Shown here in pieces: positions 1-40,704 of a stretch of DNA of 43,295 nt. A model generated the notes under the pieces. It was not told where the DNA came from. It made no database searches and was given only the letters and a program-made list of their open reading frames with translations. The stretch lies in the NCBI RefSeq assembly GCF_006345805.1, contig NW_021834688.1:1-43295 (forward strand). The letters run 5' to 3'. Both the position numbers and the translations under genes were made by a program. This DNA comes from Octopus sinensis (lineage: Eukaryota). Numbering within the stretch: position 1 is the first letter of the stretch; the number at the start of each line of letters is the position of its first letter.

Positions 1-1495
1 TTGTGCGGTAATTCGAGCAGACTTTGCTGTCGCCCTTTTTAGGCAACAGAATAAATATTGATTTCTTCCAATCAGAAGGCCAAAATTATTCATAAGTTAA
101 AAGTGATATTAAACTAATTAAACGAATTTCCAGTCCAATAGACCATCCTCCTCTTTGCCCCAACACGGACAACCTTGACCGGTCTCCAAACTTCTTTTAG
201 GCAATCTAAAGCAGTGGTTCTCAACCTTTATTTTTGTATCGCCCCCTTGGAATTTTTTTCGCCCCTCCAATTTTTATATCGCCCCCTTATTTCATTAGTA
301 AAAATTTTTATTTAAAAAATAAGAGTTTTAATGAGATCCTTGTGGTTGATGAAGATTGACAAGTTTTTCAAAATTTTTACTTCTTTTCGTAAGTGTATTT
401 CTAATGTCGCCTCTTTCTTCTATATTTAGTTTGTTTCTTTTTTTCCGATCATACTATTCAGAGTGCTGAATCCTCTCTCTACGCAGTATGACGTAGGAAA
501 ACGCATTTTTTCCCATAATTTCGGGAATTTCATTTTTATAGATTTTTCTCCCCAGAATTGTGTCAGGTTTTCATTTTTAAATTTTATTTTCAGTTCTTCG
601 TCGTTTTTTAGTTCTATTAATTCTTCTTGACATTCATCATCAGAATCATAATGAATGGGCAACCAAGGATTAATCATCCAATCAGAAAAGTTTAAATTAA
701 TTAAATCTTCAAATCTTTTTTTCAAATCTTGTTCCAAAGATTCTAAATGAAATTCATAAATTTTCAGATCGTTGTCATCAAAAGTGTGGTCATAAAAATC
801 GAATTTTCCAAATTTTCTATTACTTAAATTAAATTTGTAAAATTGAATTTTTTCAATGAATGTATTTATAATTCGTTTGCAATCAATTAAATTAACATAA
901 TTTTCTTGTAAAGCCAATGAAACTTCATTTAATTTTTTAAAAATCCAATTTAAATAAAAAATATTTTTTCTATGAATTTTGCAGGAATTAAACAATTTAA
1001 ATTCTTCTTGTAATCTTAAAAAATCAACAATTGCATCAAATAATATCACAAATCTTTCAAGACAATTTCCCTTGGATAACCATCTTACTTCGGTATGTAA
1101 AAGTAACCTAACATAATCTTCAGTTTGATTAGTGCAGTATTCACGAAAAATACGATCGTACTTGCTGTTTCTTTTAATTTTATTGATAACTTTGATAACA
1201 ATTTGCATTGATGCATTCAATTCTTCAGATAATTTTTTTGCAATTAAATGATGCCGATGTAAAATACAATGAATTGAAGTGGACATTGGAGATTTTTGTT
1301 TTAGAAAAGCTAAAAAACCACGATATTTTCCAACCATAGCCATCAGTTGCGCACGATAAAATATGTTCAAATGTTATCTCATTTAAGAATAAATAAGATT
1401 CAAACATTTTGAATATTGACAATCCTGTAGTATCCGTGACTAAAGATTTTGCAAATAATAACTCTTCTTGCAAAATAGAATCATCATCGAAATAT

Positions 1496-1526
1496 CTTTA
1501 TAAAAAGTATTTATAAAAAGTAATAC
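1496..1526 (-). other. 31-nt GT-AG intron 2 in hAT transposase
   Basis: GTATTACTTTTTATAAATACTTTTTATAAAG. Removal gives MAYVR|YFDDDSILQEELLF in frame. Confidence 0.85.
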
Positions 1527-1782
1527 CTTACATATGCCATCAAAATTGACTGATTATCAACGACAACTGATTCGTCAAGTTGGACTGAAAACTTGCGTTC
1601 TCTGAGAAATAAAATTAAAGATTGTTCAATTTCATTAGAAATTTCATTAATTCTTCTTTGTATAGTGTCGTTGCTTAATGGAATAGTCTTCATAATATTT
1701 GAAGAATCTTTTTGTAGGATATCGTTTATAAATAAATTTAAACAAGGACGGATGACATTTTCTGCAATCGAATGGGCATTAC

Positions 1783-1807
1783 CTATAAATTAAAATAATA
1801 ATGCAAC
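1783..1807 (-). other. 25-nt GT-AG intron 1 in hAT transposase
   Basis: GTTGCATTATTATTTTAATTTATAG. Removal gives IITKTG|NAHSIAENVIRPC...MKTIPLSND, restoring the KTGxxHxIAE motif. Confidence 0.9.
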
Positions 1808-3780
1808 CAGTTTTTGTGATTATCTCTGCAACTTTATATGAATAAGATAATCCAGAGACATTTTGAAATATATTTTTATTAAAGATTGACGGTAAGGCGT
1901 TTTTATTTTCAAAATTCTTTTTTAATTCTAGAAAAAAGTCTGGCTTTTTTGCAATTGAATTATGATGTTTTCGCTTTAAATGTTCAATCAAACGAGACGG
2001 TTTCATTGCCTCATTCGAAAAAATTGTACCACATTGAAGACAAAGTGGTTTATTAGGATCTTGAGGATCTTTAATAAATCCAAGAGAAATATATTCATCT
2101 TTATACATTCTGACTTTTTTTTGAACACGACCCATAAAGATAACTAGAAATCACGCTTAGAAATTTAAATAAAATATAATAAAAATATCATATTATTAAT
2201 AAATATTATTAGACTCGATTATATATCTTTATTTTTTCAAAGATTATCGACTTCTAACATAAGATTTTAATTTTTCAAATTTTAGCAATCAGCCATCGCC
2301 CCCCTACCAAAAAAAATCGCCCCTAGGGGGCGAATCGCCCGCCGTTGAGAACCACTGATCTAAAGGATCATTCTTCTTTTCCCGGATGAGACGACTTTCA
2401 TCAGGTTCCGATTCATAGTTCCATTGCTCTTCCTCTCGATTAATGTTATTATAGGAGTAGGACTCTTTTTCAAATGCTCCCGTCATTAAGTCGGTTTCGT
2501 CGAGTTTCTGATTTATATTGATATCAAGGAAAGTTATATTTTCTTCAAAACCGTCGTCCTCTTAGGACATCATTCCATGTTTATAATCGATGCACATACT
2601 TTCAAGAGTCTTCTTCATGATGATAGCTTGGATGTATGCTCTTACAGGGTACTCAATTTTCAGACCACTCTGGTATTGTTTGTAGTATTTACTGACAATG
2701 GCATCCCACGTTAATACTATGGGTACTATATTCACTTTTGCTTTGTGGATTAAAGCCAATTCACTTGCTAAGAGATCATACTTGTGGGATTTTTCGACTT
2801 CGACTTTTTTAAGAATTTGCTGCGAAGTTATTCCAATTTCGATTAGTGTAATCGTATTTTTAATTTTATCCCACACGAAAATGTCGGGCTTGTTGTTATG
2901 AACGTGTGTGGCAGTACTTATAGTAGTATCGACTCTGATCTCAACTGCTTCATTTGCAACTATAGACTGGACTGAATGGGTCTTCAATCTTTTTGACCTT
3001 TTTATTCCATACTGTCTACAGAGATGTAAGTGAATACATCTCACTACTTCATTATGCCGTCGTAAGCAATCGGTGTTTAGCATTCGCCCACACCTGGTAG
3101 CTAAATGGTCAACAGTTTTTTTCGCAGAGTTGCAATGTTTGCAATTCGTTTTTCCTGCTCCAAAGAGGAAATTGCGGTCTTGTAGTAAACAGAAGGATGC
3201 TTCTGATCTCGGAGAGATGTTTCCATATGTTAAACACGCGGAGGACTCCGTGACATCGACACTAGTATCTTCCAAACAATTAAAGAGGATTGAATGCAGA
3301 GGTTTTTTCCTGATTTCTGCAATTAGGTATTTATTCTGTAATCCTTGCAGTGCCTTCACATTGAGACTTCCATGGTCTCCAATTTTGTATTTTCGAGTGA
3401 TAAATTCTACGATTGTGGCCATATGTGTTTTCTTTGACTTCATGACCCGCAAAATTCCCGCTCTTTTCAAACAGTAATGAGACTTCTTTTCAAGGTCTCC
3501 GAAAAATTGGAGGAGCATTCTTTCGCTTTTTTGAGTTATAGATACGAGTCCTCTTTCAAGACGATTCTGGGTAGGTATAATCTTTCTTTGTTCGCCGGCT
3601 TCAGGTGAATCTTATTCTGTATTAGAATTCCTCTGATTTTTTTATCAATAACCTCAAATTCGGTTGGGTCGATATCAATAAGTCCAATATAATACAGTGA
3701 ATCCTCGCAAATTGGCCATTTTTGGTACATAGAGTTTTATGGCCAATTTGAGAAAATGGCCAATTTGAAAAAATCAATAT

Positions 3781-5335
3781 TTAAAAAATAAAATAAACAC
3801 GTTTAAATTTATTAAAATAAAATTCAATCCCTAATTCCTTTTTATTTGCTCTTTTTACATTTTCTTTGTATTTTCTTATTGCAGTAATCAGCGAAACATC
3901 ATTCTCATTTTCTGCATTACAGTAAAGTTGCCTTTCTATTTTAGTTAATGTCTTTGCAATATCTTTTCTATCGAGTGGATATATGATTTTTGTCTCTTCG
4001 TCGCTAATTTCAGACTCTTGATCCTCTTGTAAACAATTTTCGTTTATATCTTGATCTTCTGTGTTTTCGATATTTAGAAAATCTTCGCTCATTAGAGGAT
4101 CGAAAATGTCAGTTCTTTCAATTTCAGTCTCATAATGTTGAATTAATGTATTTTCGTGATTAGATTCATTTAAAATCTTAAAACAATTTTGAATAGTTTC
4201 AGTAGATACGTCATCCCAAGCCATATTAACAAACAAAATTGCATCTTTTAATGTCAATTTTTTGTATGAATTGTATACAGAAATATTTTCAGTCTCCAGC
4301 AAATCAGTTAAGTACTGTAGCTTTCTTCTCATGAAATGAGTCTTGAAGGTTTTTATAATTCCAATATCCATTGGTTGTAGTAATCCAGTAGAATTTTTAG
4401 GAAAAAATAAAATCTTAATACAATCCAAGTTTTGAGGAATAGAATGTGCAGGACAGTGGTCTATTAGCAATAAAATTTTTTTCTTTTTAATTTTAAGCTG
4501 GAGATCAAAGCTAATAATCCAATCAATAAAAATAGATCCAGTCATCCAAGCTTTCTGTGAGCTATAATATGAGACAAGACATCCATAGTCAAAATTTTTA
4601 AAACATCTAGGCATTTTTGGTTTTCCAATCATCACAGGTTTCAATTTATGACTTCCGGTCATGTTTGAACAAAGCATAATAGACACACGGTCTTTAAAAT
4701 TTTTGTATCCTTGGAATCGGTTTCTGCATACGCTTTTCGATGGAATAAGCTTGTAGTATAATGCAGTTTCATCCAAATTATAAATTAGATCAGGCTTATA
4801 CGATTTAGAAATTTCTTTAAATTCTTCACGAAAAGAATTAATGTCAACTACTTTATCTGTTCGCATCTCTCCATGTAATTTTAGCATTCTAAAACCGTGT
4901 CTCTTTTTGAATTTTGCCAGAAATCCATTAGAATTTTTAAAGTTACTAAGTTGTAGCTCTTCGGCAAAATGCGCAGCCTTACACGATATTAAGGAATCAT
5001 TCAAAAAACCACCTAAAAATTGGTTTTCAATTAATACCTTTAGACTCTATTGTATCCATCCATTCGATCAATTTTTCTTCAAGCGTAGGAAATTTTGGTT
5101 TGTGAGCAGCTTTATACGAATTTTGATAGATTTTCGAATCCCGTAAAATAGAGTCTTTATTAAGCAGTAGATTATTGATCGTCTTTCTCGAGATCGTCTT
5201 GTGGAATAAATGTGAGAATCTGTCAGCCAGAAGCTGACACGAAACACTGTCATTTTCTTCCTTGTAGTTTATAATTTGTGTTTTTTCAAGAAAAGTGAGC
5301 CGAGTATAACGTCCACGAGAAATTTTATAAGACAT
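3781..5335 (-). CDS. pogo/Tigger transposase, two exons (5335-5038, 5012-3781), 509 aa after splicing, DD30D
   Basis: N-terminal HTH and CENP-B-like HTH (FKNSNGFLAKFKKRH). Triad NLDET / LLIDHCPAH / LQPMD with 30 residues between D2 and D3. No stops or frameshifts once the 25-nt intron is removed. Confidence 0.92.
5013..5037 (-). other. 25-nt GT-AG intron in pogo transposase
   Basis: GTATTAATTGAAAACCAATTTTTAG. Removal gives WMDTIESKG|GFLNDSLISCKA. The same intron is at 13531-13555 and 36704-36728. Confidence 0.93.
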
Positions 5336-6312
5336 GTGATTAAAAAAATAGTTTATTTTCTAATTAAAAAAAATAATAATTCAAAAATTGTGGCCAATTT
5401 GCGAGGATTCACTGTAATTATAAAGAGACAATGCATGTTCATTGATGGATTTGAATAGATTCCCTGAGTTAAGTTTTGTAGTGGCCAGATTGTTAATTCT
5501 TTTCTTCATCTCATCAAAGATTGATTTTAGCACATCGCTTTTCAGTATGTTACTCATTTTATCTTCGAGCACTCCCAGGTATCGGTAGCTATCAAGTCCA
5601 TCAAGTAGTTTTGCCTCGGAAGCTAAGCACTGCACGTTAGTAGCTGACTTTTCCACATTTTTCTCTAGTCCAGGAGCCTCGAAAAAAAGATTAACATCAT
5701 TCATTATTTTTATCAACGTATCTTCTTTCTTCGAGAATATTTTTAAGTCATTCATGAAAAGTAGATGGTTTGTTGAGTATGTAAGTGATCCCTGGCCAGA
5801 GTTGTCCATATTCAGTTTTGGGTACTTCACATTTAATAATCTGCTTAACGGATCCATCAATAGCACAAAGATCTGAGGGGATAACGAGTCTCCTTGTAAG
5901 AATCCCTTTCGTAATTTAAGTTCTCCAATTTCTTTTTTGTCAAATATCAATTTAATTTTCCATCTTTTCACCAAATTTTTGATGAAATCTTTAATCCAAT
6001 TTGGAAGGCCAGAAGAGTCAAGAATCTTAAAAAGAAAGTCGTGGTCCACTGTGTCGAAAGCTTTTCTAACATCGATCCATGCAGAGGCCAAATTATTTCC
6101 GTTTTGTTGATTATTTGTTCTTAAATTCTTTCCCATTATCCGTCTGTAGAATAAATGGGGGACCAATAATGAAATCGGTCAATATAAAAAACATCTATTT
6201 GAATATTTTTGATTACTTCAAGTTCATGTTTGGTTAGGTTGAGTAAAACCATTTTTGAAATTTAGATTTGATCAATTATACTTATTTTTTTTAAAATCAC
6301 TTTTTTATTAAA

Positions 6313-6435
6313 TTGGGGGACCTGGCAAGCAGAAGGAGAAATGATCATCGGGAACGGACATGGCTTTTCCAACGAATATCAATAGCCATCTTGCGTGGGA
6401 ATTGCCATTTCATCTTATCCTCTGCTGCTAATTAA
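6313..6435 (+). mobile_element. CRE-like retrotransposon extreme 3' fragment
   Basis: LGDLASRRRNDHRERTWLFQRISIAILRGNCHFIL*, similar to the C-terminus of the CRE-like ORF at ~15880-15990. Confidence 0.75.
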
Positions 6436-6528
6436 ATTCGTGTTCAGTTTTTAAACAAAAATTTGTCTTTTTTAAAATCGGAAAACTTAGATAACCAAAA
6501 CAAAATATGTTGCGAACTATGCGCGCGA

Positions 6529-7120
6529 TCAATGTGACGTATGTTGAAAGGCAAAGATTTGAGGTGACAAGGAATCACCCTGGAGTATGCCTCTTTCCAA
6601 TTTTACCTCTCCGATTTCATTATGATTCAGAATTAGCTTAATTCTCCACTTCGTTACAAGGTTTTTCACAAAATTCACAATCCAGCAAGGGAGTCCGGAG
6701 TTTTCAAGCACCTGAATCAGAAAATCATGATATACCGAATCGAACGCTTTCTTTACATCAATCCAGGTAGAAAACAAATTATTTCCGTTTTGCTTGTAAA
6801 TGCACCGGTTAAGAATTGCTTGTTCCTTTGCCCCTTGACACATCTGCCGAGTTCCCAATTGATTATCGGCAATCAGATTATATGCCTCAATATAATCTCT
6901 CAACTTCCTGTTAACACATTTCGTTCCAAGTTTATATAAGTTAGACATACAAGTAATTGGTCTAAAATATTTGGGTCCTTGACAAATATCTTTTTTTGAG
7001 ATGAGATATGTGATTCCAGTGTAGAACCACTCATACGGTGTGTATTCACCATGAATTATCTTGACTAGTTCTTCACACAAGTGATCATGGATTGAGGTAA
7101 TTTTTTTTAAAAAGAAATTA
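6529..7120 (-). mobile_element. Second R4/Dong-like RT fragment
   Basis: FRPITCMSNLYKL, QGAKEQ, WIDVKKAFDSV, RGILQGDSLSP; truncated at both ends. Confidence 0.8.
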
Positions 7121-7122
7121 TA

Positions 7123-8040
7123 CACCCGCTAGCTCTCCAGTTTTGGAGTTGTTTAATTATTTTAAGGATGCTTTCTTTACTAAACTCTGCAAATGTATCC
7201 TCTGCCATGTCACTCTCTTGTTAATCTGTAACACACTATCACTTCTCTCATTTTTACTCCATATTTTTTTCCAATATGATAGATATTCACTGTCATTAAA
7301 CGTCAGAATTTCAATTTACTTATGACATGTAAAACCGGACAAAAATAAAAACAAATCATTTAGTAGTTAATATGTCCACCATTTGCACTGAAAATTTTGT
7401 AACATCTATTTTTCAAAGACATTACTAGTTTTTTCAATAATTCTGGTGATATATTATTCCATATTTCTGTTAATTCCTCCTTTAGTTCATTTTTGTTCTT
7501 GACTACATTTTTTGATAATTTTCTCTTCATTTCTGCCCATAGATGCTCTATAAGGTTTAGATCCGGTGATTGAGCCGGCCATTGAAGTAAAATAATGTTT
7601 TTTTTCTTTAATGTAATCTTGTACCATTTTAGATTTATGGCAAGGTGCATTATCCTCTTGTAAAATAAATGAGTCTATCCCGAATTTTTTCGCCACATTC
7701 GAATATATTATTGGATAAAATATTAATATATTTTGCGCTATTCAGGATTCCATCAATAAAAACAAGATTATCGATTTCGTTATACGAGAAACTGTCCCAG
7801 ACCATTACTTTCCACCACCGAATTTTACAGTTGGGATAATATTGCATTTTTTGTATGCAGAACCATTTTCTCTGTACACTATTTGATGCTTATTGGTATT
7901 AAAAATATCAAAAGAGCATTCATCAGTAAAAATTACCGACTTCCATGTCTCGTCGGAAATGCTTAAAAATGATTTCGTAATTTCACGTCTTGAAATTATA
8001 TTTTTGCGGATAAAAGCGATCCCGCGTATGCAAAACACAA
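7123..8040 (-). mobile_element. Degenerate Tc1-like transposon, 3' half
   Basis: VIFTDE, TVKFGGG, VMVW, LQEDNAPCH, WPAQSPDLNLIEHLW across frameshifted ORFs. A TA-CACCCG junction at 7121-7128 may be the terminus. Confidence 0.8.
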
Positions 8041-8200
8041 ATTCCTATCTTGCAAAAGACAGTATAATGCTTCGCACCCTGGACCATTGTTTCCTTTCGA
8101 TAGCCATTGCGAAGAAGTAGATAGGTCGACATTTGATTCCTCCATACATTTAAACATCATTGAGTGTGGTGAATTACAGCAGATTCGGTTAAGCAAGAAC
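8030..8200 (-). mobile_element. Third R4/Dong-like fragment
   Basis: PHSMMFKCMEESNVD...EALYCLLQDRN parallels LHSILFNCLEDTSVD...EASFCLLQDRN of the first R4 copy. Confidence 0.7.
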
Positions 8201-8379
8201 TTTCTTTGAGCGTCCTTGAGTGAGTAAATGTTCAGATTTTCTCCGCCGACAGCTGCGCGTTTAAATGCAAGAAATTCTGCGATTGATTCTTGTTTTTATT
8301 ACTTGATAGTTGACTGTTTTTTCAAACTTTTAAAAAACTGGGAGAGTATTTTTTGCTGCATTAACATTATTTTGGGGAT

Positions 8380-8540
8380 TGTTGTGATTAGATAAATACG
8401 TCATTATCCCAATCAATAGAATGGAAAAACAGCCTTTGCATGGATCAAGTTGAGGAGAATATGGTGCATCAAATTTTCGCATACTCGTATGCCTTCAAAA
8501 TATCCTTATTTTTATGGATTGGAACATTATCCATATTATA
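8380..8540 (-). mobile_element. IS630/Tc1-like DDE transposase relic
   Basis: MDNVPIHKNK ... APYSPQLDPCKGCFS read manually across a frameshift. Confidence 0.55.
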
Positions 8541-9189
8541 TAAATAAATGATTCTGCGAATTTGAGGTTTTAAATTTGATGTTTGTTATATTTGAACACA
8601 TTCTTAAAGTCCTGTCAGCAACTGTTTACGCAGACAGTAGGTATATTATTGAAACAATTGATTATGTCTTTTTTGTTTTCAACTTCTTGGAAGAATTCGT
8701 CAGCTGCTTTAATAATACACGTCTTTATATGCTTCCCGTCACTAAAAGGTTCCCACCTTTTTACGATTTTTTAACTGATAATAAAACTGGCAATAGTAGA
8801 AATTTTTGATAACTGTTTTAAATTTTTAGACGTTGACGTTAAATATCCATCATTTCTTGTAAGCTCCAGAAGGATAATTTTGCGAAAAGCACTATTTTTG
8901 GAATTAAAATGTCTTCCCAAATTGAATTTTTTGTTGTGTTTTAAAGTCTCTTGACATCTGAGACACGTAGGTAAGTTTTTAGATTGTAAAGCCCAGTATC
9001 AAAAAACAATTCAGGTGTTCGAGAAAAGATATTTAATGGAACTATACCATTTTCAGTTCAATTCTGACATTTTTATAACTATTTTGTCTTTGCGATTTCC
9101 AATATTGACAATGGGATATTCTATTTTGACATTTTTAATATTAATTTTAACAATGCTCTATTTAATAGAAAAGCAGCTATATCCATTGT

Positions 9190-9420
9190 AAAAATGGAAA
9201 TGCGTATGTTTGTAAACGTGGAGGTAGAAAGGATGCTACGATTAATCTTACTGATGATGATATTAATTTAATTTCTACAATTAAAAATTAAGAACAATCC
9301 ATCGATAACATTGAAGGAAACACAAACATTGGTAAATAATACAGTTTGTATTGTGACAGCACATAACCGACTTGGAGGCAAATTTATTACCTACAAAATG
9401 CTGCGAAGAGAACCAATTTC
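9190..9420 (+). mobile_element. Possible IS630/Tc1-like HTH relic
   Basis: KRGGRKD...NPSITLKE...YKMLRREP with stops; weak. Confidence 0.3.
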
Positions 9421-9879
9421 CAAAAATTATTTTATTTTATTAAAACACCAAGACCACGGTAAAAACCGAACAAACAACAAGTGATCCCAATGCACTCAAC
9501 CAGGGATCTTATCCTTGCTCGGTGATCTTTCCACGAGCTCATACAAGATCGCACCGGGCGGCTGGTCGCCTTTGTCGGGGCATTTGCAAACAAACTGAGC
9601 TTCAGCTTGATCAGATCTTCCAGAGGAGCTGGTCTGGAACGTTTGTTATCGTGTGAACAACGTTTGGTTAATCTGTGGGCCTTTTGTTGGACCTCTTCGA
9701 TTCACCTCCTGTTGGACCACGATAACGGCGGACCCCATGATTCGCAGAGATAGGAAATGGACGGTTCAAAGTACTGAAGGTAAATATTCGTCAATACCGG
9801 GGGGAACCGCTTTTCCATAAACCGGATAGGCTTCTGAGCACATTCATTTTTTTCTTCGCTCAAAAACCGGTGACAATTT

Positions 9880-10420
9880 ATTTTTTTTACTTATTAAGAA
9901 CTTCTACCCTTGCCATAGTAATTATAAAAAGGCATGTGCAACACAGGAAACAATGTTATTGGTCATTCTCTGCCTTCTACCACGGTCATGAGCAATTGAT
10001 CTTAGTGCGTCCAGATCCTCACCAGACTTTAAACACTTCCTCACTTTTTGGAGGTCATTGTGCAATGCGACCGGTAGCGACATCCTTGGTCGACCACAAA
10101 AGCATTTTTCTTCGAACATGAAATAATCCTCCATCGCCACGTCGGCTGGGGAAGCGAGATCCATACGCAGAATATGGCAAAACAATCTTTATCTGGCGTC
10201 AGCGATATCCCGGCTTAGAGGCCTACTTCTGCATTTGTTGTAAATTCCAGAATTCGAAATTCTGGCAGGCTAGTTCACACCAAATAACAGTCTAAGCTAT
10301 TTTCTGTGAAACGCATCAAGAGCCGTTGATTCGTCACTCGTACAGCCCCAAGTGCCGGCATTGTATAACAGCATCGACTTCACAAATACATTGTACATAC
10401 GCATCCGTTTTTTTACTTCT
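9880..10420 (-). mobile_element. RTE-like LINE C-terminal relic
   Basis: RMYNVFVKSMLLYNAGTWG...LDAFHRK*LR...RISNSGIY...RLFCHILRMD...GRPR with several stops. Confidence 0.75.
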
Positions 10421-10699
10421 TTTTTAATAAAAAATACATACTGGAAAAATGAAAACAAGTGCATTTTTACTAATTGAATAATATATTTAATGCTTGGTAG
10501 GTTTATTTGGGTTAAGATGAGAGTTTATCTTTCAGAGATTGAAATTAGATAATCCTTTTGGCCATATCTCTTTCAAATCCTCTTTTAACAGGCTGATAAT
10601 TGCATACTACAGGAAGGGAAGCTCATACTATCAGGAAAGTCATTTTGACTGCAAAATGAATTCCGTTGTTAATTAAAAAGAGTGTATATTCAAAATGCT

Positions 10700-11950
10700 T
10701 CAGTTCACAACAATAAACTAACTTTTTGATTTTACCCTGACCCACGACGTGGGTAGTAATTGGATGGAAATAAGATTCTAGAAAATCACATAAGTGTACT
10801 TATACAATAGCATGCAAATGTTCCGGAATGAGCGTCGTATTTTACTCCCAAAATATTTGGCGATTTTTGAAACGGTATCTTTACATCGTTTAAACACAGT
10901 TTCACTTACGCTTTGCTGAAGTACGCAGCGCAGTAATCGACTTGAGGTACTCAATTTGGAAAATAGTTCAAGTCTGACCTTGTATTTTTGGTATATACAT
11001 TCTTCCTGATGGTGAATACCAAACTCTGGTAAATGTAGCATTCCAACAATTATTAAAAACTAAATCTAAATCAGAAAAATCTTTTCTAGTTGGTTCATAA
11101 TGATTCAGTTCTTTCGAAGTAAAGACAGAAAAGCCCAGACTACTGGCTAAGTCTTAAAGGATAGCTCCACCCATATTAGTTGTTTCACATCTATAACTCA
11201 CATTTTCGCGTTAAGATCTCAGGCCAGGATTGTCAAGGAATTTTTTTCAAAGAACGTCACAATGACATTTGAATAACGCCTTAGAGACTTTGATTACATT
11301 CCACCTATGATCAGCCAGCCAGAAGTCGTGTGCAACTCAAGCACAATGAGGATTTGTCAGGTTTTAAAGGTTTTAGTGTCTGATCAGTTTTAATATACAT
11401 ATTGAATAGAGAATCGAAGTGCGAAGCTAGAATACTAGCTTTTTCGACGTCCTCGGTAACAGTACGATCGAGATTATCGTGGACAATGATAGTTAATACT
11501 CTACTTCTTTGCGTACGGAGTTCTTTGATTTTCTCAGGTAAAGTTGTGTTTTCCGTTTGTACTCTGAGTTCTTTTTCTATTAGAGAAAGTCGTCCAATTT
11601 CCGGACTACTCTGTTTGTGTCTCGATCCGTGTATCGGCATTAACTGGTCAGAAAAAATCAATAATTCCATTCTATAATATATCTGCAACAGTAGACCCGT
11701 CACTATGGACATTACAGAAGCTCGTTAGCGCCTATTTGGGACAAACTAAGACTCGATAAAGATACTCATGCTTTTGGGTAATAAATCATATCACAACGAT
11801 AGAAAATCGGCGTTCCGAGGACGTCCACAAACAAAAATACCTACTGTTATTTCAAAAGACATTCAACGCATTAAGATACAAAAATAGAGACGACCTTGAT
11901 ACTCTCTGGAGTATACCACGGAACCGCGCATATTGAAAAAATATGATCAA
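10700..11950 (-). mobile_element. L2/CR1-like LINE relic
   Basis: TEDVEKASILASHFDSLF linker motif and RRSFRN...LLYK RT C-terminal motif; heavily decayed. Confidence 0.5.
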
Positions 11951-12123
11951 TATGTTTCTATGTTAGTGCAAATAATATTTCTCCTGGACCGCCGTAAGAA
12001 CAATTTCTAATCTGATGAAATATTTCATTAAAAAAATTGTACCTGATTTTAAAACCCTTATGCTTCTTTGAATCCAAGGATGACTATAGGAAAAATTATT
12101 ACCAAGTCATTCAAAGTCTATCG

Positions 12124-12440
12124 AGTCAGGAACAAGAAGAACGTGTCCGTGAATTGTTAAGTCTAGTTGGCATTATTTCTGAAAGCATATCTAATCTTCC
12201 TTATGAGTTTAGTGGTGGTCAACACCAAAAAATTGGCATTGTACGATCTTTAGCTTTAAATCGCAGTTATATAGTATGTGATTAACCTATTGCATCTTTT
12301 GATGTCTCTATTTATGCACAAATCATCAATCTTCTAAAAAAACTCCAAGAAGATATTAGACTCACATATCGTTTAATTCCACATGACTAAATACTTATCG
12401 TCGGGTGTAACTGTCATGTATTTAGGAAAAATCATAAAAG
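12124..12440 (+). pseudogene. oppF: Bacterial OppF/DppF-like oligopeptide ABC ATPase fragment
   Basis: [10 protein letters not shown]...[21 protein letters not shown]...IVCD*PIASFDVSIYAQIINLLKKLQED...TY..IPHD...VMYLGKI. This gives the ABC signature, Walker B (E to stop) and H-loop in Opp/Dpp-type context. Confidence 0.85.
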
Positions 12441-12669
12441 TGAAAATAAAATTCTCCAGGGGACAAAATCTCTTATTACCTATTAAATATTTTATGTCGC
12501 GATCCAGAGCTGTGAGACGCCAAGAAAATATTAATAAATTTTAATAAAAATTACATTTCTGAACTTTTTTTGTTGATCTCTTCAGTAAATATCTGAAATT
12601 ACTAATTTTTTCTTTCACCCAAAACAACATAACATAAAATCATATGTTGAACGTAGTATTTTAATGGAT

Positions 12670-13888
12670 TTTCGTGACTAGATTTATTTAAAATCTTAAA
12701 ACAATATTGAATGGTTTCAGTAGATATGTCACCCCAACCCATATTAACAAACAAAATTGCATCTTTTAATGTCAATTTTTTGTATTAATTGTATACATAA
12801 ATATTTTCAGTCTCCAGCAAATCAGTTAAGAACTGTAGCTTTCTTCTCATGAAATGAGTCTTGAAGGTTTTTATAATTCCAATATCCATTGGTTGTAGTA
12901 ATCCAGTAGAATTTTTGGGAAAAAATAAAATCTTAATACAATCCAAGTTTTTAAGAATAGAATGTGCAGGACAGTGGTCTATTAGCAATAAAATTACCTT
13001 CTTTTCAATTTTAAGCTGGAGATCAAAGCTAATAATCCAATCAACAAAAATAGATCCAGTCATCCAAGCTTTCTGCAAGCTATAATATGAGACAAGACAT
13101 CCATAGTCAAAATTTCTAAAACATCTAGGCATTTTCGGTTTTCCGATCATCACAGGTTTCAATTTATGACTTACGGTCATGTTTGAACAAAGCATAATAG
13201 ACAGGCGGTCTTCAAAATTTTTGTATCCTTAAAATCAGTTTCTGCATACGCTTTTCGATGAAATAAGCTTGTAATATAATGCAGTTTTATCCAAATTATA
13301 AATTAGATCAGGCTTATACGATTTAGAAATTTCTTTGAATTCTTCACGAAAGGAATTAATGTCAACTTCTCTATCAGTTCGCATCTCTCCATGTAATTTT
13401 AGCATTCTAAAACCGTGTCTCTTTTTGAATTTTGCCAAAAATCCATTAGAATTTTTAAAGTTACTAAGTTGTAACTCTTTGGCAAAATGCGCAGCCTTAC
13501 ACGATATTAAGGAATCATTCAAAAAACCACCTAGAAATTAGTTTTCAATTAATACCTTTAGACTCTATTGTATCCATTCATTCGATCAATTTTTCGTCAA
13601 GCGTAGGAAATTTTGGTTTGTAAGCAGCTTTAAACGAATTTTGATAGATTTTCGGATCCCGTAAAATAAAGTCTTTATTAAGCAGTAGATTATTGATCGT
13701 CTTTCTCGAGATCGTCTGCGGAATAAATGTGAGAATCTGTAAGCCATAAGCTGACACAAAACACTGTCGTTTTCTTCCCTGTAGTTTATAATTTCTGTTT
13801 TTTCAAGAAAAGTGAACCGAGTATAACGTCCACGAGAAATTTTATAAGACATGTGATTTAAAATTGGCCAATTTGCAAGGGTTCACTG
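12670..13888 (-). mobile_element. Second, decayed copy of the same pogo family, 3'-truncated
   Basis: TIR 13865-13888 (2 mismatches vs copy 1) followed by TA. ORF pieces are nearly identical to 3781-5335 but with stops and a frameshift. The 25-nt intron is retained at 13531-13555. Confidence 0.93.
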
Positions 13889-13949
13889 TATATTTTTAAT
13901 AATTAATAAAAGTGCAGGATTTTATTTTGAATTATAAAGTTGTGGTGGT

Positions 13950-14015
13950 ATATTGGACTCATTGATATTGATCCCGGAGAGTTCGAGTAGATCGATAAGA
14001 ATATCCGACTCGTGC
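13950..14015 (+). mobile_element. Short R4/Dong-like relic abutting the CRE element
   Basis: YIGLIDIDPGEFE*IDKNIR matches YIGLIDIDPTEFEVIDKKIR of the first R4 copy. Confidence 0.7.
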
Positions 14016-16095
14016 TGGCCATCACCAAACTAATGAACAGGATGCTATCAGGGACACTGCCTGAAACAATTCGACATGTAATGTTCTCTGCCAAGCTAAT
14101 CGCATTCGACAAGAAGGGAGGGGGAGTACGCCCTATTGCTGTTGGACTGGTCTTTCGTCGTTTGGCCTCAAAGCTTGTTTGCAGAGCAATCCTGCCTACG
14201 TTGATAACACAATTACAACCAGCCCAAATTGGGGTCGGTTCACCGGGGGGTTGTGAAGCGGCAGTTCATGCTGTCCGAACATTCACTGAAAAGAACGAGG
14301 ACACTCCTTTTGTAATCGTCAAAATCGACATTAAAAACGCCTTCAACTCGATACGACGTGACACAATTCTGGAGGATTGCCTCACACATTACCCATCAGT
14401 GTACAGCTATATTAATAGTATTCATAGCTCTTATCGAAAACCATCGAGTTTGGTGCACGGCCAATATCACATCCCATTGTGTTCTGGAGTCCAACAAGGA
14501 GACCCATTGGGCCCTGCCTTGTTTAGCCTGGGAATTGCCCGTGTCACCAAATATTGTTCGACTCCTCTGAGGGTATGGTATTTGGATGATTGCACAATGG
14601 GCGGCCAGCCGAAGGATGTGCTAGATTGCCTAAAAAGTCTGATAGCCCAATTGGAATCCCTATGCGTAACCCTGAACACAATTAAGTGCGAAGTAACCAA
14701 TTTTGGATTTTCGCAGCCTAAATGGGACCTGATTCTTGAAACATTCAGAGAGATCATCCCTAAAGCCACAGAAACCAAACCAGAACAACTAGAAATACTT
14801 GGATGCCCTCTCACTGATGCAGGAATCAGTAACACTTTAATAACAAAAGAACATCAACTAAAAACAACTTTCAGACCTTTGGAGTTGCTAGACGCACATA
14901 CCTCCCTATTCCTGCTAAAAAACGCCTTGTCAGCACAGAAACTAAATTACGTTCTTCGGGGTGCACCCTGCTACCTGGAAACGCAACAGCTCGACAATAT
15001 CGATTGTCTCTTTCGGACCACAATTGAACGCATTACGAATGTGAAATTCGACGACCAAGGGTGGGACCAAGCGACCCTACCCGTTAACCTGGGCGGACTG
15101 GGAATCCCTTCTCCGAATGATCTGGCTCGCCCCGCATATCTATCCTCTTTGGACTTCAGCCAACTGCTGATCAGGATGATTCTCCAACTCCAAACTGAAT
15201 CATCTGAAATCACAGAGATGGAGCATTCGAGAGGGATGATGCCTGAGCAGAAAAATCGTTACAAGACCATCTGCGAGGATAAATACGAGAGGCTTCTGAA
15301 CCAGTCAAACCAACACAGACGTGCCTGTCTAGTGACTGGAAGATGCGAATCAAGTGGTGCTTGGATCAATGCACTCCCCGTTGATAGTGTCGGAACTCAC
15401 CTTGACGACGATACTGTCCGCATTGGCATCAGCACCAGACTTGCACTGGAGATTTGCCGGACTCACAAATGCCGGTGTGGGGCCACCGTCGATTGTTATG
15501 GACACCATGCTCTCTCTTATCGAAGAAGTGCAGGACGATTTCCAAGACACAAGCGATCAACGAAATTGTCAAGCGAGCCCTGGAGTCTGCAGGATACCCA
15601 GCCGTATTTGAACCGGTCGGGCTTGATCGAGGAGATGGAAAACGTCCTGATGGGATCACAATTTTCCCATTTGAAGAGGGGAAACCTCTAGTCTGGGACG
15701 CAACCTGTGTGGACACCCTCTGCCCGTCCAACATTGCCGGGAGCGCAGTGGACAGACTGTATGCCGCGGAAAAAACGATGAGGGCGAAGGAGAGAAAATA
15801 TGAAGCGCTACGAGATCAATTCGTGTTCTGTCCGATTGTGGTCGAGACAACTGGAGGAATAAGTGGGAAATCGCTTCGCTTCCTAAAGAAGCTTGGACGC
15901 TTAGCCACATTAAAAAGTTACGACACACGTGAGACCCGGTGGCTTCTCCAGTTGATCTCCGTTGCTATCGTGAGAGGCAACAATCAATATCAATACAGCC
16001 GTTCCGCGAGATCGCAACTTAATGTGAAATCTCGCACTGGCCAGCCACATAAGATCAAGATAGAAAAAGAGAACATGTTATTAGGAACTAACTAA
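14016..16095 (+). mobile_element. CRE-clade non-LTR retrotransposon (RT + Zn knuckle + RLE), 5'-truncated, one frameshift
   Basis: GGVRPIAVG, GGCEAAVH, DIKNAFNS, GVQQGDPLGPALF, WYLDD, GGLGI, CRCG...GHHAL, DGKRPDG...WD, VETTG, ISVAIVRGN. A 1-nt deletion at ~15550 separates ORFs 14012-15691 and 15454-16095. Confidence 0.85.
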
Positions 16096-16519
16096 TCCAA
16101 ACGAACGAATCCAAACGAACTGTCCCCCGCATCTATTTTTCTCTCGTGCTGTGGCTGATGTAGACATCCGGTTCCTCAGTGAAATCACTGATGACGGCGT
16201 CACTCGTCAATCCAGAGTGCATGTAATATGCATGGAACCTTCGGCCGGAATGATAGCAGTGAGATTCGAACCCAGAGCTTCGCGAAACTGCCAAATTCTT
16301 CAAGCACTGAGAGGCAACGCAACGTCAATTATTTTGGCAAGGTCCACTTCGGACAGATGGCTTTATTAGCTAATTAGTTTCTTTTTTAGCTGTTTTTGTT
16401 AATATATATCCGACGAATTCTTAAGAACAGTTTTGAAGATAACATTTGGAGTTTGTAATTGACAAATGATTAGTAAAAGACAGTTAGAAAAAAAGAAAGT
16501 TTGTTTAAAACTACGCAGT

Positions 16520-16723
16520 TTAGGACGCCCTCCCAGCCTCACGGATTGCGAAACAGTTGCCGCGGATTACGGCAATGAGAGGCGTTGAAGAAGCCAAAAA
16601 GACTCTCTCGAGTCGTCCGTTTTTTTGGCGATTCTTCTCCCCAAACCACGTAGGAAACAAAGCGACTTGGGGGCAAAGACCCCAGAGGTCTCAACGGCGA
16701 TGGGCGTGAAAACAAAACGGTTG
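16520..16723 (-). mobile_element. CRE-like 3' fragment
   Basis: FVFTPIAVETSGVFAPKSLCFLRGLGRRIAKKTDDSRESFWLLQRL(S)IAVIRGNCFAI...*; one frameshift. Confidence 0.8.
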
Positions 16724-16820
16724 ACAGTTTACATTTTAAGTTTGCGGTTGACATTTTAAGTTTGTAATTGTAAATTTGAAGTTCATAATAGACAAATTGA
16801 CTTGAAAATGGTATAGTAGC

Positions 16821-17235
16821 TCGATTGAGTGGGACTTTTGTATATTGGATGAAATTCATATGGAATAGATTTCCCATGTTTTGAATCTTTTAAAGTCTAA
16901 GAATATGCCTATATTCACTGGGACACCAGTTCTGAAAAATTTGGGAGATATTTGAGCCTGGTTTGACTTTCTTATGCCTGGGTTCCTTGGTACTGAGGGA
17001 GCCTTTAACCGACATTTTGTCAAGACTGTCAGAAATCAGACTGACCCCATGTTGCTCCAGCCATCAGAGGGACTGATTGACTTACAGAGTTTGCACAAGT
17101 TGGTCCTACTCTTCATTCTGTGGAGGATGAAAGAGGATGTCTTAAATGACTTCCTTCCAAGACAATCCAGGACTACCAATGCCATATGAGTCCACTTCAA
17201 ACAGTTCTCTACAACTCCCTCTCACTAAAAGTAGG
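16821..17235 (+). pseudogene. BTAF1: BTAF1/Mot1-like SNF2 ATPase fragment
   Basis: WDFCILDEIH...FTGTPV...I*AWFDFLMPGFLGTE...LHKLVLLFILWRMKEDVLND...KTIQDYQCHMSPLQ. It has two stops and a frameshift and matches recalled Mot1/BTAF1 motifs (DEGH, GTPIQN, FDFLMPGFLGTE, LRRMKEDVL, IIQDYYC). Confidence 0.85.
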
Positions 17236-17531
17236 GCCGTAATGTTTGTTTATATTACGCCTCAACTTTCCGCAATTAAAAGGGAAGATAGTCAAGATCA
17301 GTATCCCAGGTAAATTAAATACATGTGTGGACTTGATCATACGTTGACACAAACTGTTCAAGCCCAACTCCTAAACCAGTCTCTAAAACAACCACCGGAA
17401 AAATAGGGTTCAACAGTTCCGGAACTGCAACTCGACCGATTTAACACAAAGACATATCCATTTTTAAAAACTAAAATGGGCCATCGAAAGTGTACTCTAA
17501 TCTAACACTAAGAAATTTTATTTACTCAAAT

Positions 17532-18730
17532 TCACAAATTACTGAATTTAGTCTCCGTCACCACTTTTATAATTTTCCTTACGTCAGAAATATCCTCTAT
17601 AACGTATGAAGGAACAAGTCTTCTGGCCAATCCAAGGACGGTCCTCACTCTTTTAAACCTCTCGAAATAATTAGTCTCATTCAATGGCCACTCTTTGATT
17701 GTACTCATAAGTAAGAGGTAGCATTTTTCTTCGGAATACTCCTCTATCTCCTGAATTAGCGCATCATGGTAGTACTCCTCTGCAACCTCCACCAATTCTC
17801 TTCGATCGTAATCATTCAAGTATTTCCTAGAGAATCAAAAACCCTAAATAACTTGGAATTCTTAGGCGTGGGGGAGAGTCTGGAATAAATGCCAAACAAT
17901 TCTTCTGCACTCCCCAACTCGAAAAGAACGTCTAATAGCAGTCTAACTCCCCTAGAACAATAGAACTAACCATTACTTGCGTAGATATATGTGGAACTTG
18001 CCTCGTTCCACATTATCAGAGTCAATCATCCACACATTCTATCATTAAGGTCTAGTCATTACTGCAAATAAATTTTCCTTCGTGTTCAAAGGCGGGAGAA
18101 TAGGCTTGTGGTCTAAAATATATAAGAAAGAAATAACATTTGATAAGGAATATCACAACAACCCGATGCACGTATTTTCTGTATGAGGAATGAAATGAAA
18201 GGAGAACTAATATCATACAGACAACAATGTGTGGCATAATCAGAACAATCTACTTATGTGAGCAGAATTTGGTCACCACGCAAGTCTTCCATTACGTAAG
18301 ATATCATGAGAATATACTCAATTATTACTTTGTTCTTTGGATCCAGAAATAGGCACTAAATATTTACTCATTTCAAACTGTAATAAATGATTTTTTGGCC
18401 TGGTTGAGTTGACCAAGTGTTGTGGCCGTCATTCCCAGCTTAAGTTGAGTATAGAAACACTTCGGATCGATGTCAGAGGCCTAATAGATGCTCAAATATG
18501 TATACTTTTTTTAAATATTTAAAAGCAGGTTGAAAGTTTTTAAGGTGGAAATAGTAATTGCCAATAAAATTAAGAGTGTAGTATTCTACACTACCAATAG
18601 ACAAAGAACGTTTCCCAGACAAGAGTTGATTTAGGACAGCACGTTGGTTTCTAAGGAGTTGGCTAAGTTCATGCTCCTTTTCTGAAATGGACAGGGCCAT
18701 TTGAATTAGCTGCATTTCTGGAATCGACAT
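17532..18730 (-). pseudogene. CABIN1: Internally deleted CABIN1 paralog: N-terminal TPR exons fused at 18087/18088 to the last exons
   Basis: ATG at 18730. Introns 18481-18505, 18356-18378, 18250-18276 and 18113-18137 (23-27 nt) give a TPR region that aligns without gaps to the recalled CABIN1 N-terminus. 17532-18087 is identical to 40705-41260. Confidence 0.75.
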
Positions 18731-21638: not shown

Positions 21639-22960
21639 CAGTATGGTCCAAAAATATTACACCCCTTGACTTTTTGACAAATAAAATCAATTTTCGATAC
21701 TAATAATTAATTACTTAAACTATTTTTATGCAATTTAGTTCCTATTAAACTTGATTTAATGATTTTTATTTTTTTAAAACCAAAAATCAATTTATTTTAT
21801 ATCTGTGAGCAAAAACATGAAAAATTGCCGGCTCATAAATAGTACACCATTTAAAAAGTCAGTATTTGGCGTGCCCTCCTTTATTTTTGATGACTGCTTT
21901 TAGTCTCGAGGTCATTGATTCCACCAATTTGATACATATTTCCTTTGGAATTTTTTTCCATTCTTCAATAATTAAATTTTCTAGATTTTTTTTATTTGTG
22001 ACGTCAAATGTTTCAATTTTTCTTTTTAAATAGCACCATAGGTGTTCAATTGGATTTAAATCTGGCGACATGCTCGGCCAGTCCATTTGCAAGATTTTTT
22101 TTCAGTCAAAAAACTTTTAGACTTCTTTGCAGTATGCTTCGGATCGTTATTTTGTTGGAAAATCGGATTTCCTGAATGATCGTTGATAAAGGAAATTATT
22201 TTTTCCTCAAGTATATTAATGTACATGTCTACATTCATGATCCCATTTATGATATAAAGTTCACCAGGTCCTTGCAAGCTCATAGATCCCCATATCTTTA
22301 TATTTCCGCCGCCATGTTTCATTGTAGCTACTATGCATTTTGGATTTAGTGCATTGCCATTTTTGCGCCACACATGCTGAATTCCATCTGATCCGAACAA
22401 ATTGATTTTGGTCTCATCTGACACAGAATTCTATTCCAAAAATCCATATTTTTGTTTACATATTTTTTTGCAAATTGTAAACGGTTTCTTTTGTGCCTTT
22501 TTGACAATAATGGTTTCCTTCGAGGTACTCGGCCATATAAATTGCATTCATGTAGTGTCCTTTTTATTGTAAATTTTGATATTTGAATATCAGAATAAGA
22601 TTCCAATTGTTTTGCAATTGCAGATGAAGAGATTCTTGGATTTTTTTCAGCAGAACGTCTGATCAGACGGATTGATCTGATAGATAACTTCTTCGTTCTC
22701 CCTCTTTCTCCATTTAAAATGCCATTTATTCCGTTTTTTCGGTATTTTTGTACAATCTTAGGAACGGTGTTCTTGCTAATCTCAAGTTTCTTGGCAATTT
22801 TTTTGTATCCATAGTTGTCCTCGTGTAAGGAAATAATACGATTTTTAATATCTGAAGAGAGATCAACACTACGAAAGTTCATGTTAATTATTCTGATAAT
22901 AAGGTAATTATTGTGGCGCGCCATAACTGAAACGGGCGCCAGACGTGTAACATTTTGACC
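21639..22960 (-). mobile_element. Tc1 transposon (DD34E type, D2 to N), CDS ~22882-21859 with two 1-nt frameshifts
   Basis: Paired-like HTH, GRVPRRKPLLS, WSDETK, KHGGG, FQQNNDPKH, WPSMSPDLNPIE. The left end is TA|CAGTATGGTCC at 21639. The right outer end was not found. Confidence 0.88.
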
Positions 22961-23149
22961 CTGAGAAAACCGCACAATGACCTTGATTAGCAATTAACAA
23001 AACTTTGAAATAATGTGACGCGCCATAACTGAAACATCTAATGAACAACAACATCTAATGAACAACATATTATGTCACATGGGCGACTATGTCGCGATGG
23101 GCAGCCAGTCCTTTTACGTGTTTCTATGGAAACCGCAGAAAAGGTATTA

Positions 23150-26124: not shown

Positions 26125-28004
26125 GTATCTACACATTTAGGCACCTCATAAAATTGCATAATATATTACGCAATTTATTACCTAATCTCAAGTACCCTTG
26201 TTTCCTCATATCTAGGAACCTCTCCAAATTGCATAATATATTACGTAATTTATTACATAATCTCAAGTATCCTCGTATCTACACATTTAGGCACCTCTTA
26301 AAATTGCATAATTTATTACGCAATTTATTACCTAATCTCAAGTACCCTTGTTTCCTCATATCTAGGAACCTCTCCAAATTGCATAATATATTAAGTAATT
26401 TATTACATAATCTCAAGTATCCTCGTATCTACACATTTAGGCACCTCTTAAAATTGCATAATATATTACGCAATTTATTACCTAATCTCAAGTACCCTTT
26501 TTTCCTCAAATCTAGGAACCTCTCCAAATTGCATAATATATTACGCAATTTATTACCTAATCTCAAGTACCCTTGTTTCTTCATATCTAGAAACCTCACC
26601 AAATTGCATAATATATTACGCAATTTATTACATAATCTCAAGTATCCTCGTATCTACACATTTAGGCACCTCTTAAAATTGCATAATATATTACGCAATT
26701 TATTACCTAATCTCAAGTACCCTTTTTTCCTCATATCTAGAAACCTCACCAAATTGCATAATATATTACGTAATTTATTACATAATCTCAAGTATCCTCG
26801 TATCTACACATTTAGGCACCTCTTAAAATTGCATAATATATTACGCAATTTATAACCTAATCTCAAGTACCCTTGTTTCCTCATATCTAGGAACCTCTCC
26901 AAATTGCATAATATATAACGTAATTTATTACTTAATCTCAAGTATCCTCGTATCTACACATTTAGGCTCCTCTTAAAATTGCATAATATATTACGCAATT
27001 TATTACCTAATCTCAAGTACCCTTGTTTCTTCATATCTAGAAACCTCACCAAATTGCATAATATATTACGTAATTATTACATAATCTCAAGTATCCTCGT
27101 ATCTACATATTTAGGAACCTCCCCAAATTGCATAATATATTACGCAATTTATTACCTAATCTCAAGTACCCTTGTTTCCTCATATCTAGGAACCTCTTTA
27201 AATTGCATAATATATTAAGTAATTTATTACATAATCTCAAGTATCCTCGTATCTACACATTTAGGCACCTCTTAAAATTGCATAATATATTACGCAATTT
27301 ATTACCTAATCTCAAGTACCCTTTTTCCTCAAATCTAGGAACCTCTCCAAATTGCATAATATATACGCAATTTATTACCTAATCTCAAGTACCCTTGTTT
27401 CTTCATATCTAGAAACCTCACCAAATTGCATAATATATTACGCAATTTATTACATAATCTCAAGTATCCTCGTATCTACACATTTAGGCACCTCTTAAAA
27501 TTGCATAATATATTACGCAATTTATTACCTAATCTCAAGTACCCTTTTTTCCTCATATCTAGAAACCTCACCAAATTGCATAATATATTACGTAATTTAT
27601 TACATAATCTCAAGTATCCTCGTATCTACACATTTAGGCACCTCTTAAAATTGCATAATATATTACGCAATTTATAACCTAATCTCAAGTACCCTTGTTT
27701 CCTCATATCTAGGAACCTCTCCAAATTGCATAATATATAACGTAATTTATTACTTAATCTCAAGTATCCTCGTATCTACACATTTAGGCTCTTCTTAAAA
27801 TTGCATAATATATTACGCAATTTATTACCTAATCTCAAGTACCCTTGTTTCCTCATTTCTAGAAACTTCTCCAAATTGCATAATATATTACGTAATTATT
27901 ACATAATCTCAAGTATCCTCGTATCTACATATTTAGAAACCTCCCCAAATTGCATAATATATTACGCAATTATTACCTAATCTAAGTACCCTTGTTTCCT
28001 CATA
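26125..28004. repeat. Tandem satellite, ~25 monomers of 75 bp, two main variants, 11-monomer higher-order repeat
   Basis: AAATTGCATAAT recurs at 26151, 26226, 26301... Diagnostic variants recur ~822-824 bp apart (26376/27200, 26826/27648, 27051/27873). Confidence 0.97.
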
Positions 28005-35296: not shown

Positions 35297-35613
35297 AGTC
35301 AGGAACAAGAAGAACGTGTCCGTGAATTGTTAAGTCTAGTTGGCATTATTTCTGAAAGCATATCTAATCTTCCTTATGAGTTTAGTGGTGGTCAACACCA
35401 AAAAATTGGCATTGTACGATCTTTAGCTTTAAATCGCAGTTATATAGTATGTGATTAACCTATTGCATCTTTTGATGTCTCTATTTATGCACAAATCATC
35501 AATCTTCTAAAAAAACTCCAAGAAGATATTAGACTCACATATCGTTTAATTCCACATGACTAAATACTTATCGTCGGGTGTAACTGTCATGTATTTAGGA
35601 AAAATCATAAAAG
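35297..35613 (+). pseudogene. oppF: Duplicate of bacterial OppF-like fragment
   Basis: Same translation as 12124-12440. Confidence 0.85.
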
Positions 35614-35842
35614 TGAAAATAAAATTCTCCAGGGGACAAAATCTCTTATTACCTATTAAATATTTTATGTCGCGATCCAGAGCTGTGAGACGCCAAGAAA
35701 ATATTAATAAATTTTAATAAAAATTACATTTCTGAACTTTTTTTGTTGATCTCTTCAGTAAATATCTGAAATTACTAATTTTTTCTTTCACCCAAAACAA
35801 CATAACATAAAATCATATGTTGAACGTAGTATTTTAATGGAT

Positions 35843-37061: not shown

Positions 37062-37188
37062 TATATTTTTAATAATTAATAAAAGTGCAGGATTTTATTT
37101 TGAATTATAAAGTTGTGGTGGTATATTGGACTCATTGATATTGATCCCGGAGAGTTCGAGTAGATCGATAAGAATATCCGACTCGTGC

Positions 37189-40408: not shown

Positions 40409-40704
40409 GCCGTAATGTTTGTTTATATTACGCCTCAACTTTCCGCAATTAAAAGGGAAGATAGTCAAGATCAGTATCCCAGGTAAATTAAATACATGTG
40501 TGGACTTGATCATACGTTGACACAAACTGTTCAAGCCCAACTCCTAAACCAGTCTCTAAAACAACCACCGGAAAAATAGGGTTCAACAGTTCCGGAACTG
40601 CAACTCGACCGATTTAACACAAAGACATATCCATTTTTAAAAACTAAAATGGGCCATCGAAAGTGTACTCTAATCTAACACTAAGAAATTTTATTTACTC
40701 AAAT

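Follow-up and report, generated by a model that had tools for sequence, protein, structure and literature searches.

Several DNA transposons, among them Ac, Tol2 and the P element, carry introns of host size in their transposase genes. For BuT2, a hAT element of Drosophila, five exons and four introns of 58 to 154 nt have been predicted (PMC3942097). Among animals, introns of less than 30 bp are known only from dicyemids and myxobolids (myxozoans), in which the splice signals are reduced to GTa...AG (PMC13644364). One dicyemid, Dicyema japonicum, was collected from Octopus sinensis, whose renal sac it inhabits; its genome has 36.7% GC, 49% repeats, many copies of long interspersed nuclear elements (LINEs) and a mean intron length of 38 bp (PMC6736024), and this species is among those with introns of less than 30 bp (PMC13644364). 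The ultrashort introns of these studies lie in host genes, often at ancestral positions (PMC6736024, PMC13644364). Here we describe a hAT transposon of the Buster clade, 2,146 bp long, at positions 212-2357 on the minus strand of a 43,295-nt stretch of DNA (the window), which makes up all of contig VCDQ01010770.1 in the O. sinensis assembly GCA_006345805.1; coordinates are those of the window unless another contig is named. The transposase gene is interrupted by two GT...AG segments of 25 and 31 nt. On the evidence of its sequence, we think it probable that this is a recent, defective Buster hAT copy with ordinary spliceosomal introns, from a host with tiny introns that is most likely a dicyemid.

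Two GT...AG segments in a Buster-clade transposase gene

The hAT coding sequence consists of five open pieces on the minus strand (Table 1), and the coding frame shifts by +1 at each of the two segments. We compared 21 Buster relatives with the element by tblastn and found that the coordinates of the relatives are continuous over both junctions. Removal of both segments restores the frame and gives a gapless alignment to uninterrupted Buster relatives. The best full-length relative, P0196, which is a 592-amino-acid (aa) single open reading frame (ORF) on a Logan contig, aligns to the element in the blocks 6-110, 110-196, 195-249, 250-556 and 555-592; at the junctions (marked here by a slash), KTG/NAHS of the element corresponds to KAG/FPHS of P0196 and YVR/YFDDD corresponds to YCR/YIDDD. 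There is no overlap between the open frames at the second junction: frame 1 closes at 1514, and frame 2 opens at 1497. A single indel therefore cannot bridge them, and the segment must be removed. The element and both segments lie exactly where an initial annotation of this DNA had placed them, and its claim that their removal restores the motifs KTG/NAHSIAE and YVR/YFDDD in frame agrees with the gapless tblastn alignments.

If this reading is correct, the host genome would carry spliceosomal introns of ~19 to 30 nt throughout, the two hAT segments would be ordinary U2-type introns of the host's normal size, and the host spliceosome would remove both of them from the transposase pre-mRNA. The two hAT introns, like the 25-nt intron of a neighboring pogo element described below, have lengths of the form 3n+1, and their retention therefore shifts the frame. 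In mini-intron 1 at least, retention also brings an in-frame stop, which would leave a 118-aa N-terminal product; a regulatory role for this product is speculation. Only spliced RNA would thus code for the transposase. We infer that such splicing takes place; the pogo neighbor, an intact copy that transposed very recently, would be arranged in the same way.

Exon 3 is broken by two frameshifts, both of which the initial annotation had missed. One is an 8-nt deletion that sits directly after the second catalytic Asp and is probably not an assembly error. The other, a 1-nt indel in a run of seven A residues, may be one, given that the glycyl-tRNA synthetase (GlyRS) gene on a sister contig is likewise interrupted by a 1-nt frame break, at a short T run (see below). 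The two frameshifts would leave this copy unable to make a full transposase even if it were spliced; its coding sequence would still be interrupted after splicing, unlike that of an autonomous copy.

In so damaged a copy, the two segments might not be introns at all but small insertions in a decaying pseudogene, with GT and AG at their ends by chance. The 8-nt deletion and the 1-nt indel make it certain that the copy is decaying, the nearby Tc1-like copies are full of frameshifts, and mini-intron 2 consists of GTAT, two successive copies of TACTTTTTATAAA and a final G, that is, a perfect 13-nt tandem duplication of the slippage type. We nevertheless consider this explanation unlikely. By a rough estimate from the composition of the element, an arbitrary insert would show GT...AG by chance with a frequency of ~0.0014 to 0.003 per junction and of less than ~1e-5 at both junctions. 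Both sizes fall inside the range of the GlyRS introns on the sister contig (19 to 53 nt), the other lesions in the window are of 1 or 8 nt rather than insertions of 25 to 31 nt, and a segment of the same kind is the sole interruption of the intact, recently mobile pogo element.

The assignment of the element to the Buster type, proposed in the initial annotation, is borne out by its ends and by its protein matches. The target site duplication (TSD), CTTTAGAT, fits the Buster pattern nnnTAnnn with its central TA, and the terminal inverted repeats (TIRs) are short, start with CAG and match perfectly over 14 bp at both ends (CAGTGGTTCTCAAC). Three GGGGCGA repeats lie inside each end; the window has nine copies of this motif in all, and these six are within ~75 nt of the ends of the element. 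They are presumed to be transposase-binding sites. A word-indexed protein search with a 315-aa piece of the transposase returned 274 relatives (best match, 46% identity, E 7.6e-76), and all of the named top matches were ZBED5/8/9, SCAND3 or FAM200, i.e., Buster-derived proteins. Judged by these named top matches rather than by a tree, the transposase appears to group with Buster-derived proteins and not with the Ac or Tip groups. The motifs QLDES, CATDG and CVERGFS, which hold the DDE residues, and EVRWLSKG, which holds the RW motif, align with the motifs of P0196. Local Pfam searches of the hAT pieces gave only a subthreshold zf-BED match at the N terminus (19.3 bits against a cut-off of 20.6, in a region 47% identical to P0196) and none of the FAM200/ZBED5 families that homologues carry. 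A PDB sequence search with the 315-aa piece gave nothing useful, and in an exhaustive search of 1.84 billion representative proteins, the best hAT relative was 58% identical over a short piece only.

A neighboring pogo element and the origin of the introns

A transposon of an unrelated superfamily, a pogo/Tigger element, lies ~1.3 kb from the hAT element. It encodes a protein of 509 aa with HTH_Tnp_Tc5 (a CENP-B-type helix-turn-helix [HTH]) and DDE_1 domains (Pfam E 1.5e-43) only when a 25-nt GT...AG segment at 5037-5013 is removed, which agrees with the initial annotation that this neighbor too has a mini-intron. The segment is absent from all six homologues examined (510 to 549 aa), which align contiguously across the junction. 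The same pogo family is found at 98 to 99% nucleotide identity on two sister contigs, VCDQ01000570.1 (854 kb; L001) and VCDQ01003981.1 (373 kb; L002), and the intron is kept with its GT and AG in five copies, of which the window has three, L001 one and L002 one. Between pogo copies that are 95% identical, 2 of the 25 intron positions differ.

The pogo element is located inside one of two 13.3-kb segment copies (3111-3694 plus 5415-18087, and 28004-41260) that are 99.98% identical to each other. The pogo insertion, of 1,720 bp, sets the two copies apart, and the other copy has an empty TA site at ~28588. A near-identical segment with an empty site implies that the pogo insertion is either very recent or an allelic polymorphism; the 13.3-kb repeat itself reflects either a duplication of very recent date or the assembly of two haplotypes one after the other. 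We regard the pogo element as the best indirect evidence found here for the removal of such segments in vivo. If Octopus-labeled copies are set aside, the pogo transposase has its nearest named relatives in Dictyocoela and Cucumispora, microsporidia of amphipods, at ~50% identity. This odd taxonomic neighborhood may hint at horizontal transfer among parasites.

P0196, P0030 and P0025 are single ORFs without introns at the hAT positions, and in copies from a fish and a scorpion junction 1 is read through without a break. Introns that are annotated in the fish and scorpion relatives were considered and rejected: they are not real introns but serve in the annotation to bypass a stop or a frameshift in degraded copies. 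Because every sampled relative is without them, the hAT introns appear to be lineage-specific insertions and not shrunken introns of the sampled relatives; these relatives are only ~45% identical to the hAT transposase.

As to when and how the introns arose, one possibility, which we put forward tentatively, is that both transposase genes gained them de novo within the dicyemid lineage, already at a length of ~25 nt. If this were true, the tiny introns of dicyemids would come from fresh gain as well as from ancestral shrinkage, and the intron-bearing elements would become tied to hosts with a spliceosome able to process introns as short as these. In a search of ~90 kb of the window, L001 and L002 that allowed up to four mismatches, the full-length hAT introns recurred nowhere else, as an introner-like family would, and the pogo intron recurred solely within pogo copies. 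An origin of the introns by tandem duplication or from introners was rejected, given this lack of recurrence and the absence, on inspection, of any likeness to the flanking exons.

The presence of host-sized introns in two unrelated superfamilies within 5 kb had led the initial annotation to propose a genome-wide process by which mini-introns are gained or shrunk in transposase genes, as a candidate for an undescribed system. In favor of a process specific to transposases, these mini-introns are lineage-specific and lacking in the relatives. The annotation had left gain and shrinkage open and had named introns at the same positions in close relatives from hosts with normal introns as the mark of shrinkage; none was found in the sampled, ~45%-identical relatives, so descent from shared introns by shrinkage is disfavored, but no process peculiar to transposases emerged either. 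We regard such a process as very improbable. The housekeeping GlyRS gene has introns of the same size, and the size class is therefore not transposon specific. In the two Tc1-like copies in the window, the frame breaks examined were 1-nt frameshifts, several of them at homopolymers, and no mini-introns were found there. A second, degraded hAT family on L002 (3466-4998; 1,533 bp, with TIRs CAGCGTTTCTCAAC and the perfect TSD ATTTAAAA) keeps a Buster-like EVRWLSQG motif and reads through the position equivalent to intron 2 (FVRFVEAN). The failure of the intron sequences to recur in the ~90 kb searched likewise gives nothing to suggest an introner-like mobile source. Nor is the system undescribed, since tiny introns have been published (PMC6736024, PMC13644364) and host-sized introns are known in hAT elements (PMC3942097). 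The case is an example of the published tiny-intron pattern and not a new system.

Table 1. Coordinates of the hAT element, the pogo element and other features of the window
Feature	Position	Strand	Description
hAT open piece 1	2135-1808	-	MGRVQKK to KTG
hAT open piece 2	1782-1527	-	NAHSIAE to MAYVR
hAT open piece 3	1495 to ~1341	-	YFDDD to CATDG
hAT open piece 4	~1340 to ~440	-	AMVGKYRGF to SMIGKK
hAT open piece 5	~444 to 331	-	RNKLNIEERGD to QGSH, then stop
hAT exon 1 (predicted)	1808-2135	-	BED-like zinc-finger region; tblastn to P0196 residues 6-110, 47% identity
hAT mini-intron 1 (predicted)	1807-1783	-	GTTGCATTATTATTTTAATTTATAG; 25 nt, GT...AG, phase 1
hAT exon 2 (predicted)	1527-1782	-	Holds the first catalytic Asp (QLDES); 46% identity to P0196 residues 110-196 by tblastn
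hAT mini-intron 2 (predicted)	1526-1496	-	GTATTACTTTTTATAAATACTTTTTATAAAG; 31 nt, GT...AG, phase 2
hAT exon 3 (predicted)	328-1495	-	Catalytic core and C-terminal part; P0196 residues 195-592 in three frames
hAT frameshift 1	Between 1341 and 1340	-	8-nt deletion; CATDG/AMVGK versus CATDGAPSMVGK in relatives
hAT frameshift 2	438-444	-	1-nt indel in A7 run; P0196 coordinates pass from 556 to 555 across the frame change
TSD, left copy	204-211	-	CTTTAGAT on coding strand; identical 8-mer on both flanks
TSD, right copy	2358-2365	-	CTTTAGAT; perfect 8 bp
hAT 3' TIR	212-225	-	Perfect 14-bp inverted match to 2344-2357
hAT 5' TIR	2344-2357	-	CAGTGGTTCTCAAC
Subterminal repeats, 3' end	239-285	-	Three GGGGCGA repeats, 20-nt spacing; putative transposase-binding sites
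Subterminal repeats, 5' end	2296-2333	-	Three GGGGCGA/TCGCCCC repeats
pogo/Tigger element	3695-5414	-	Intact; perfect 24-bp TIRs, TA duplication
pogo exons (predicted)	5335-5038 and 5012-3781	-	298 and 1,232 nt
pogo mini-intron (predicted)	5037-5013	-	GTATTAATTGAAAACCAATTTTTAG; 25 nt, GT...AG, phase 1; sole interruption
Tc1-like copies	21859-22993 and 7360-8038		Sleeping Beauty-type HTH in the copy at 21.8-23.0 kb
LINE copies	14012-16095, 37185-39268 and 23279-25891		~50% GC versus ~30% background
Satellite array	26151-28004		75-bp unit repeated ~25 times (83% matches); strong negative GC skew

Source of the contig

The GlyRS gene on L001, a locus that we read directly, has GT-AG introns of 23, 27, 19, 53, 25 and 26 nt. 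Among the best 120 matches listed, no GlyRS is more than 73% identical to its product, and the gene structure at this locus is not that of an octopus gene. The coding sequence is broken at ~11069 of L001 by a 1-nt frame break at a short T run, with TT for an expected TTT (SGH/LERFSDYMVKD). This break is most simply explained as an assembly indel error, and 1-nt frameshifts of this assembly should not be over-read. The protein annotated here as 'glycine--tRNA ligase, mitochondrial 1-like [Octopus sinensis]' (P0189, L001 10001-14860) is chimeric: it starts with a pogo fragment and goes on with some GlyRS exons and unrelated ORFs. The model skipped conserved GlyRS exons and called a 25-nt intron as 34 nt; the annotation pipeline was evidently unable to model introns so short.

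Because a sister contig that shares the pogo family has a GlyRS gene with tiny GT-AG introns, we infer that the window is most likely dicyemid DNA, from D. japonicum or a relative, that was co-assembled with the octopus. A ciliate or myxozoan origin, as might be suggested by intron size alone, was rejected in view of the standard genetic code and of the octopus assembly in which the contig is found. The contig could also be true octopus DNA, into which the hAT and pogo elements had been horizontally transferred from a dicyemid, with introns that the octopus spliceosome could not remove. It is deposited as Octopus sinensis, its transposon-only content includes no gene that would fix its origin, and the contact between parasite and host is intimate (PMC6736024). 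Even so, we find this explanation hard to credit. The same pogo family stands beside a housekeeping gene with 19- to 27-nt introns on an 854-kb contig, and a short interspersed nuclear element (SINE) with the tail of the window's GC-rich LINE is inserted in the pogo copy of L001 and so ties the transposon sets to a single genome. That the pogo insertion is polymorphic implies that the element is active at present, and for this it must be spliced. The high repeat content and the many LINE copies fit D. japonicum, and the GC content of the window (~28 to 54% per kb) brackets the 36.7% of that genome (PMC6736024).

Several observations weigh against our interpretation of the segments as ordinary introns of a dicyemid transposon. 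There is no host gene in the window, and the assignment to a tiny-intron genome rests on shared transposon families. No further copies of the hAT family were found in the window, L001 or L002. Mini-intron 1 begins with GTT, versus the GTA preferred in published logos, and mini-intron 2 would be only 18 nt long without its 13-nt duplication. Finally, in a copy with two frameshifts, whether these mark a pseudogene or assembly errors, insertions made at the time of decay are conceivable.

A dicyemid source would have consequences for the public O. sinensis assembly, which appears to hold parasite contigs of up to 854 kb, with gene models that are mis-spliced and carry octopus names, the pogo-GlyRS chimera being an example. 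In the literature searched, we found no report of dicyemid contamination in this assembly. None of seven window ORFs was present in the protein collection on exact look-up.

The window as a whole contains nothing but transposons (LINEs, with their reverse transcriptase and endonuclease, and pogo, Tc1-like and hAT elements), and Rfam and tRNA scans of it gave no matches. The satellite array lies between a GC-rich LINE and the duplicated 13.3-kb segment. On L001, a SINE-like insertion of 340 bp lies inside the pogo copy at 8937-9276; it has a tRNA-like box and the TSD AGCTACAACTT. Its terminal tail matches that of the LINE at 14.0-16.1 kb of the window, which suggests that the two form a LINE/SINE pair.

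Comparison with known systems

The three introns, which belong to two transposon families and are absent from the sampled relatives, are candidates for recent intron gain, and their lineage is known above all for the shrinkage of introns; such gains could be dated with the help of transposon copies that differ in age. More generally, it seems that the transposons of a genome with ~25-nt introns carry ~25-nt introns themselves. In ordinary animal hosts, an intron of 25 nt should prevent expression, which bears on the host range of these elements and on their horizontal transfer.

The hAT element resembles the members of the Buster clade (TcBuster, AeBuster and the ZBED5/8/9, SCAND3 and FAM200 proteins) in its 8-bp nnnTAnnn TSD, its CAG TIRs, a protein identity of 40 to 47% over the whole length and the DDE residues and RW motif in the aligned pieces. 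It differs from the Buster relatives checked, which are single ORFs, in that its gene is split by introns of 25 and 31 nt and that this copy is frameshifted. Similarly, its pogo neighbor has the TA duplication, the 24-bp TIRs and the CENP-B-type HTH and DDE_1 domains of pogo/Tigger elements (Tc1/mariner superfamily) but, in contrast to its six intronless homologues, contains one 25-nt intron.

As in BuT2, the transposase gene of the hAT element would be cut by spliceosomal introns of the length typical of the host. Here, however, that length is ~25 nt, the shortest class known in animals, and the intron positions are not common to the sampled relatives. With the introns of dicyemids and myxobolids (PMC6736024, PMC13644364), the segments described here share the GT...AG ends, the size (19 to 31 nt), the AT richness and the minimal splice signals. 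In the literature searched, we found no description of mini-introns in dicyemid transposons, and unlike the published dicyemid introns, those described here would lie within mobile elements, at positions that lack an intron in relatives.

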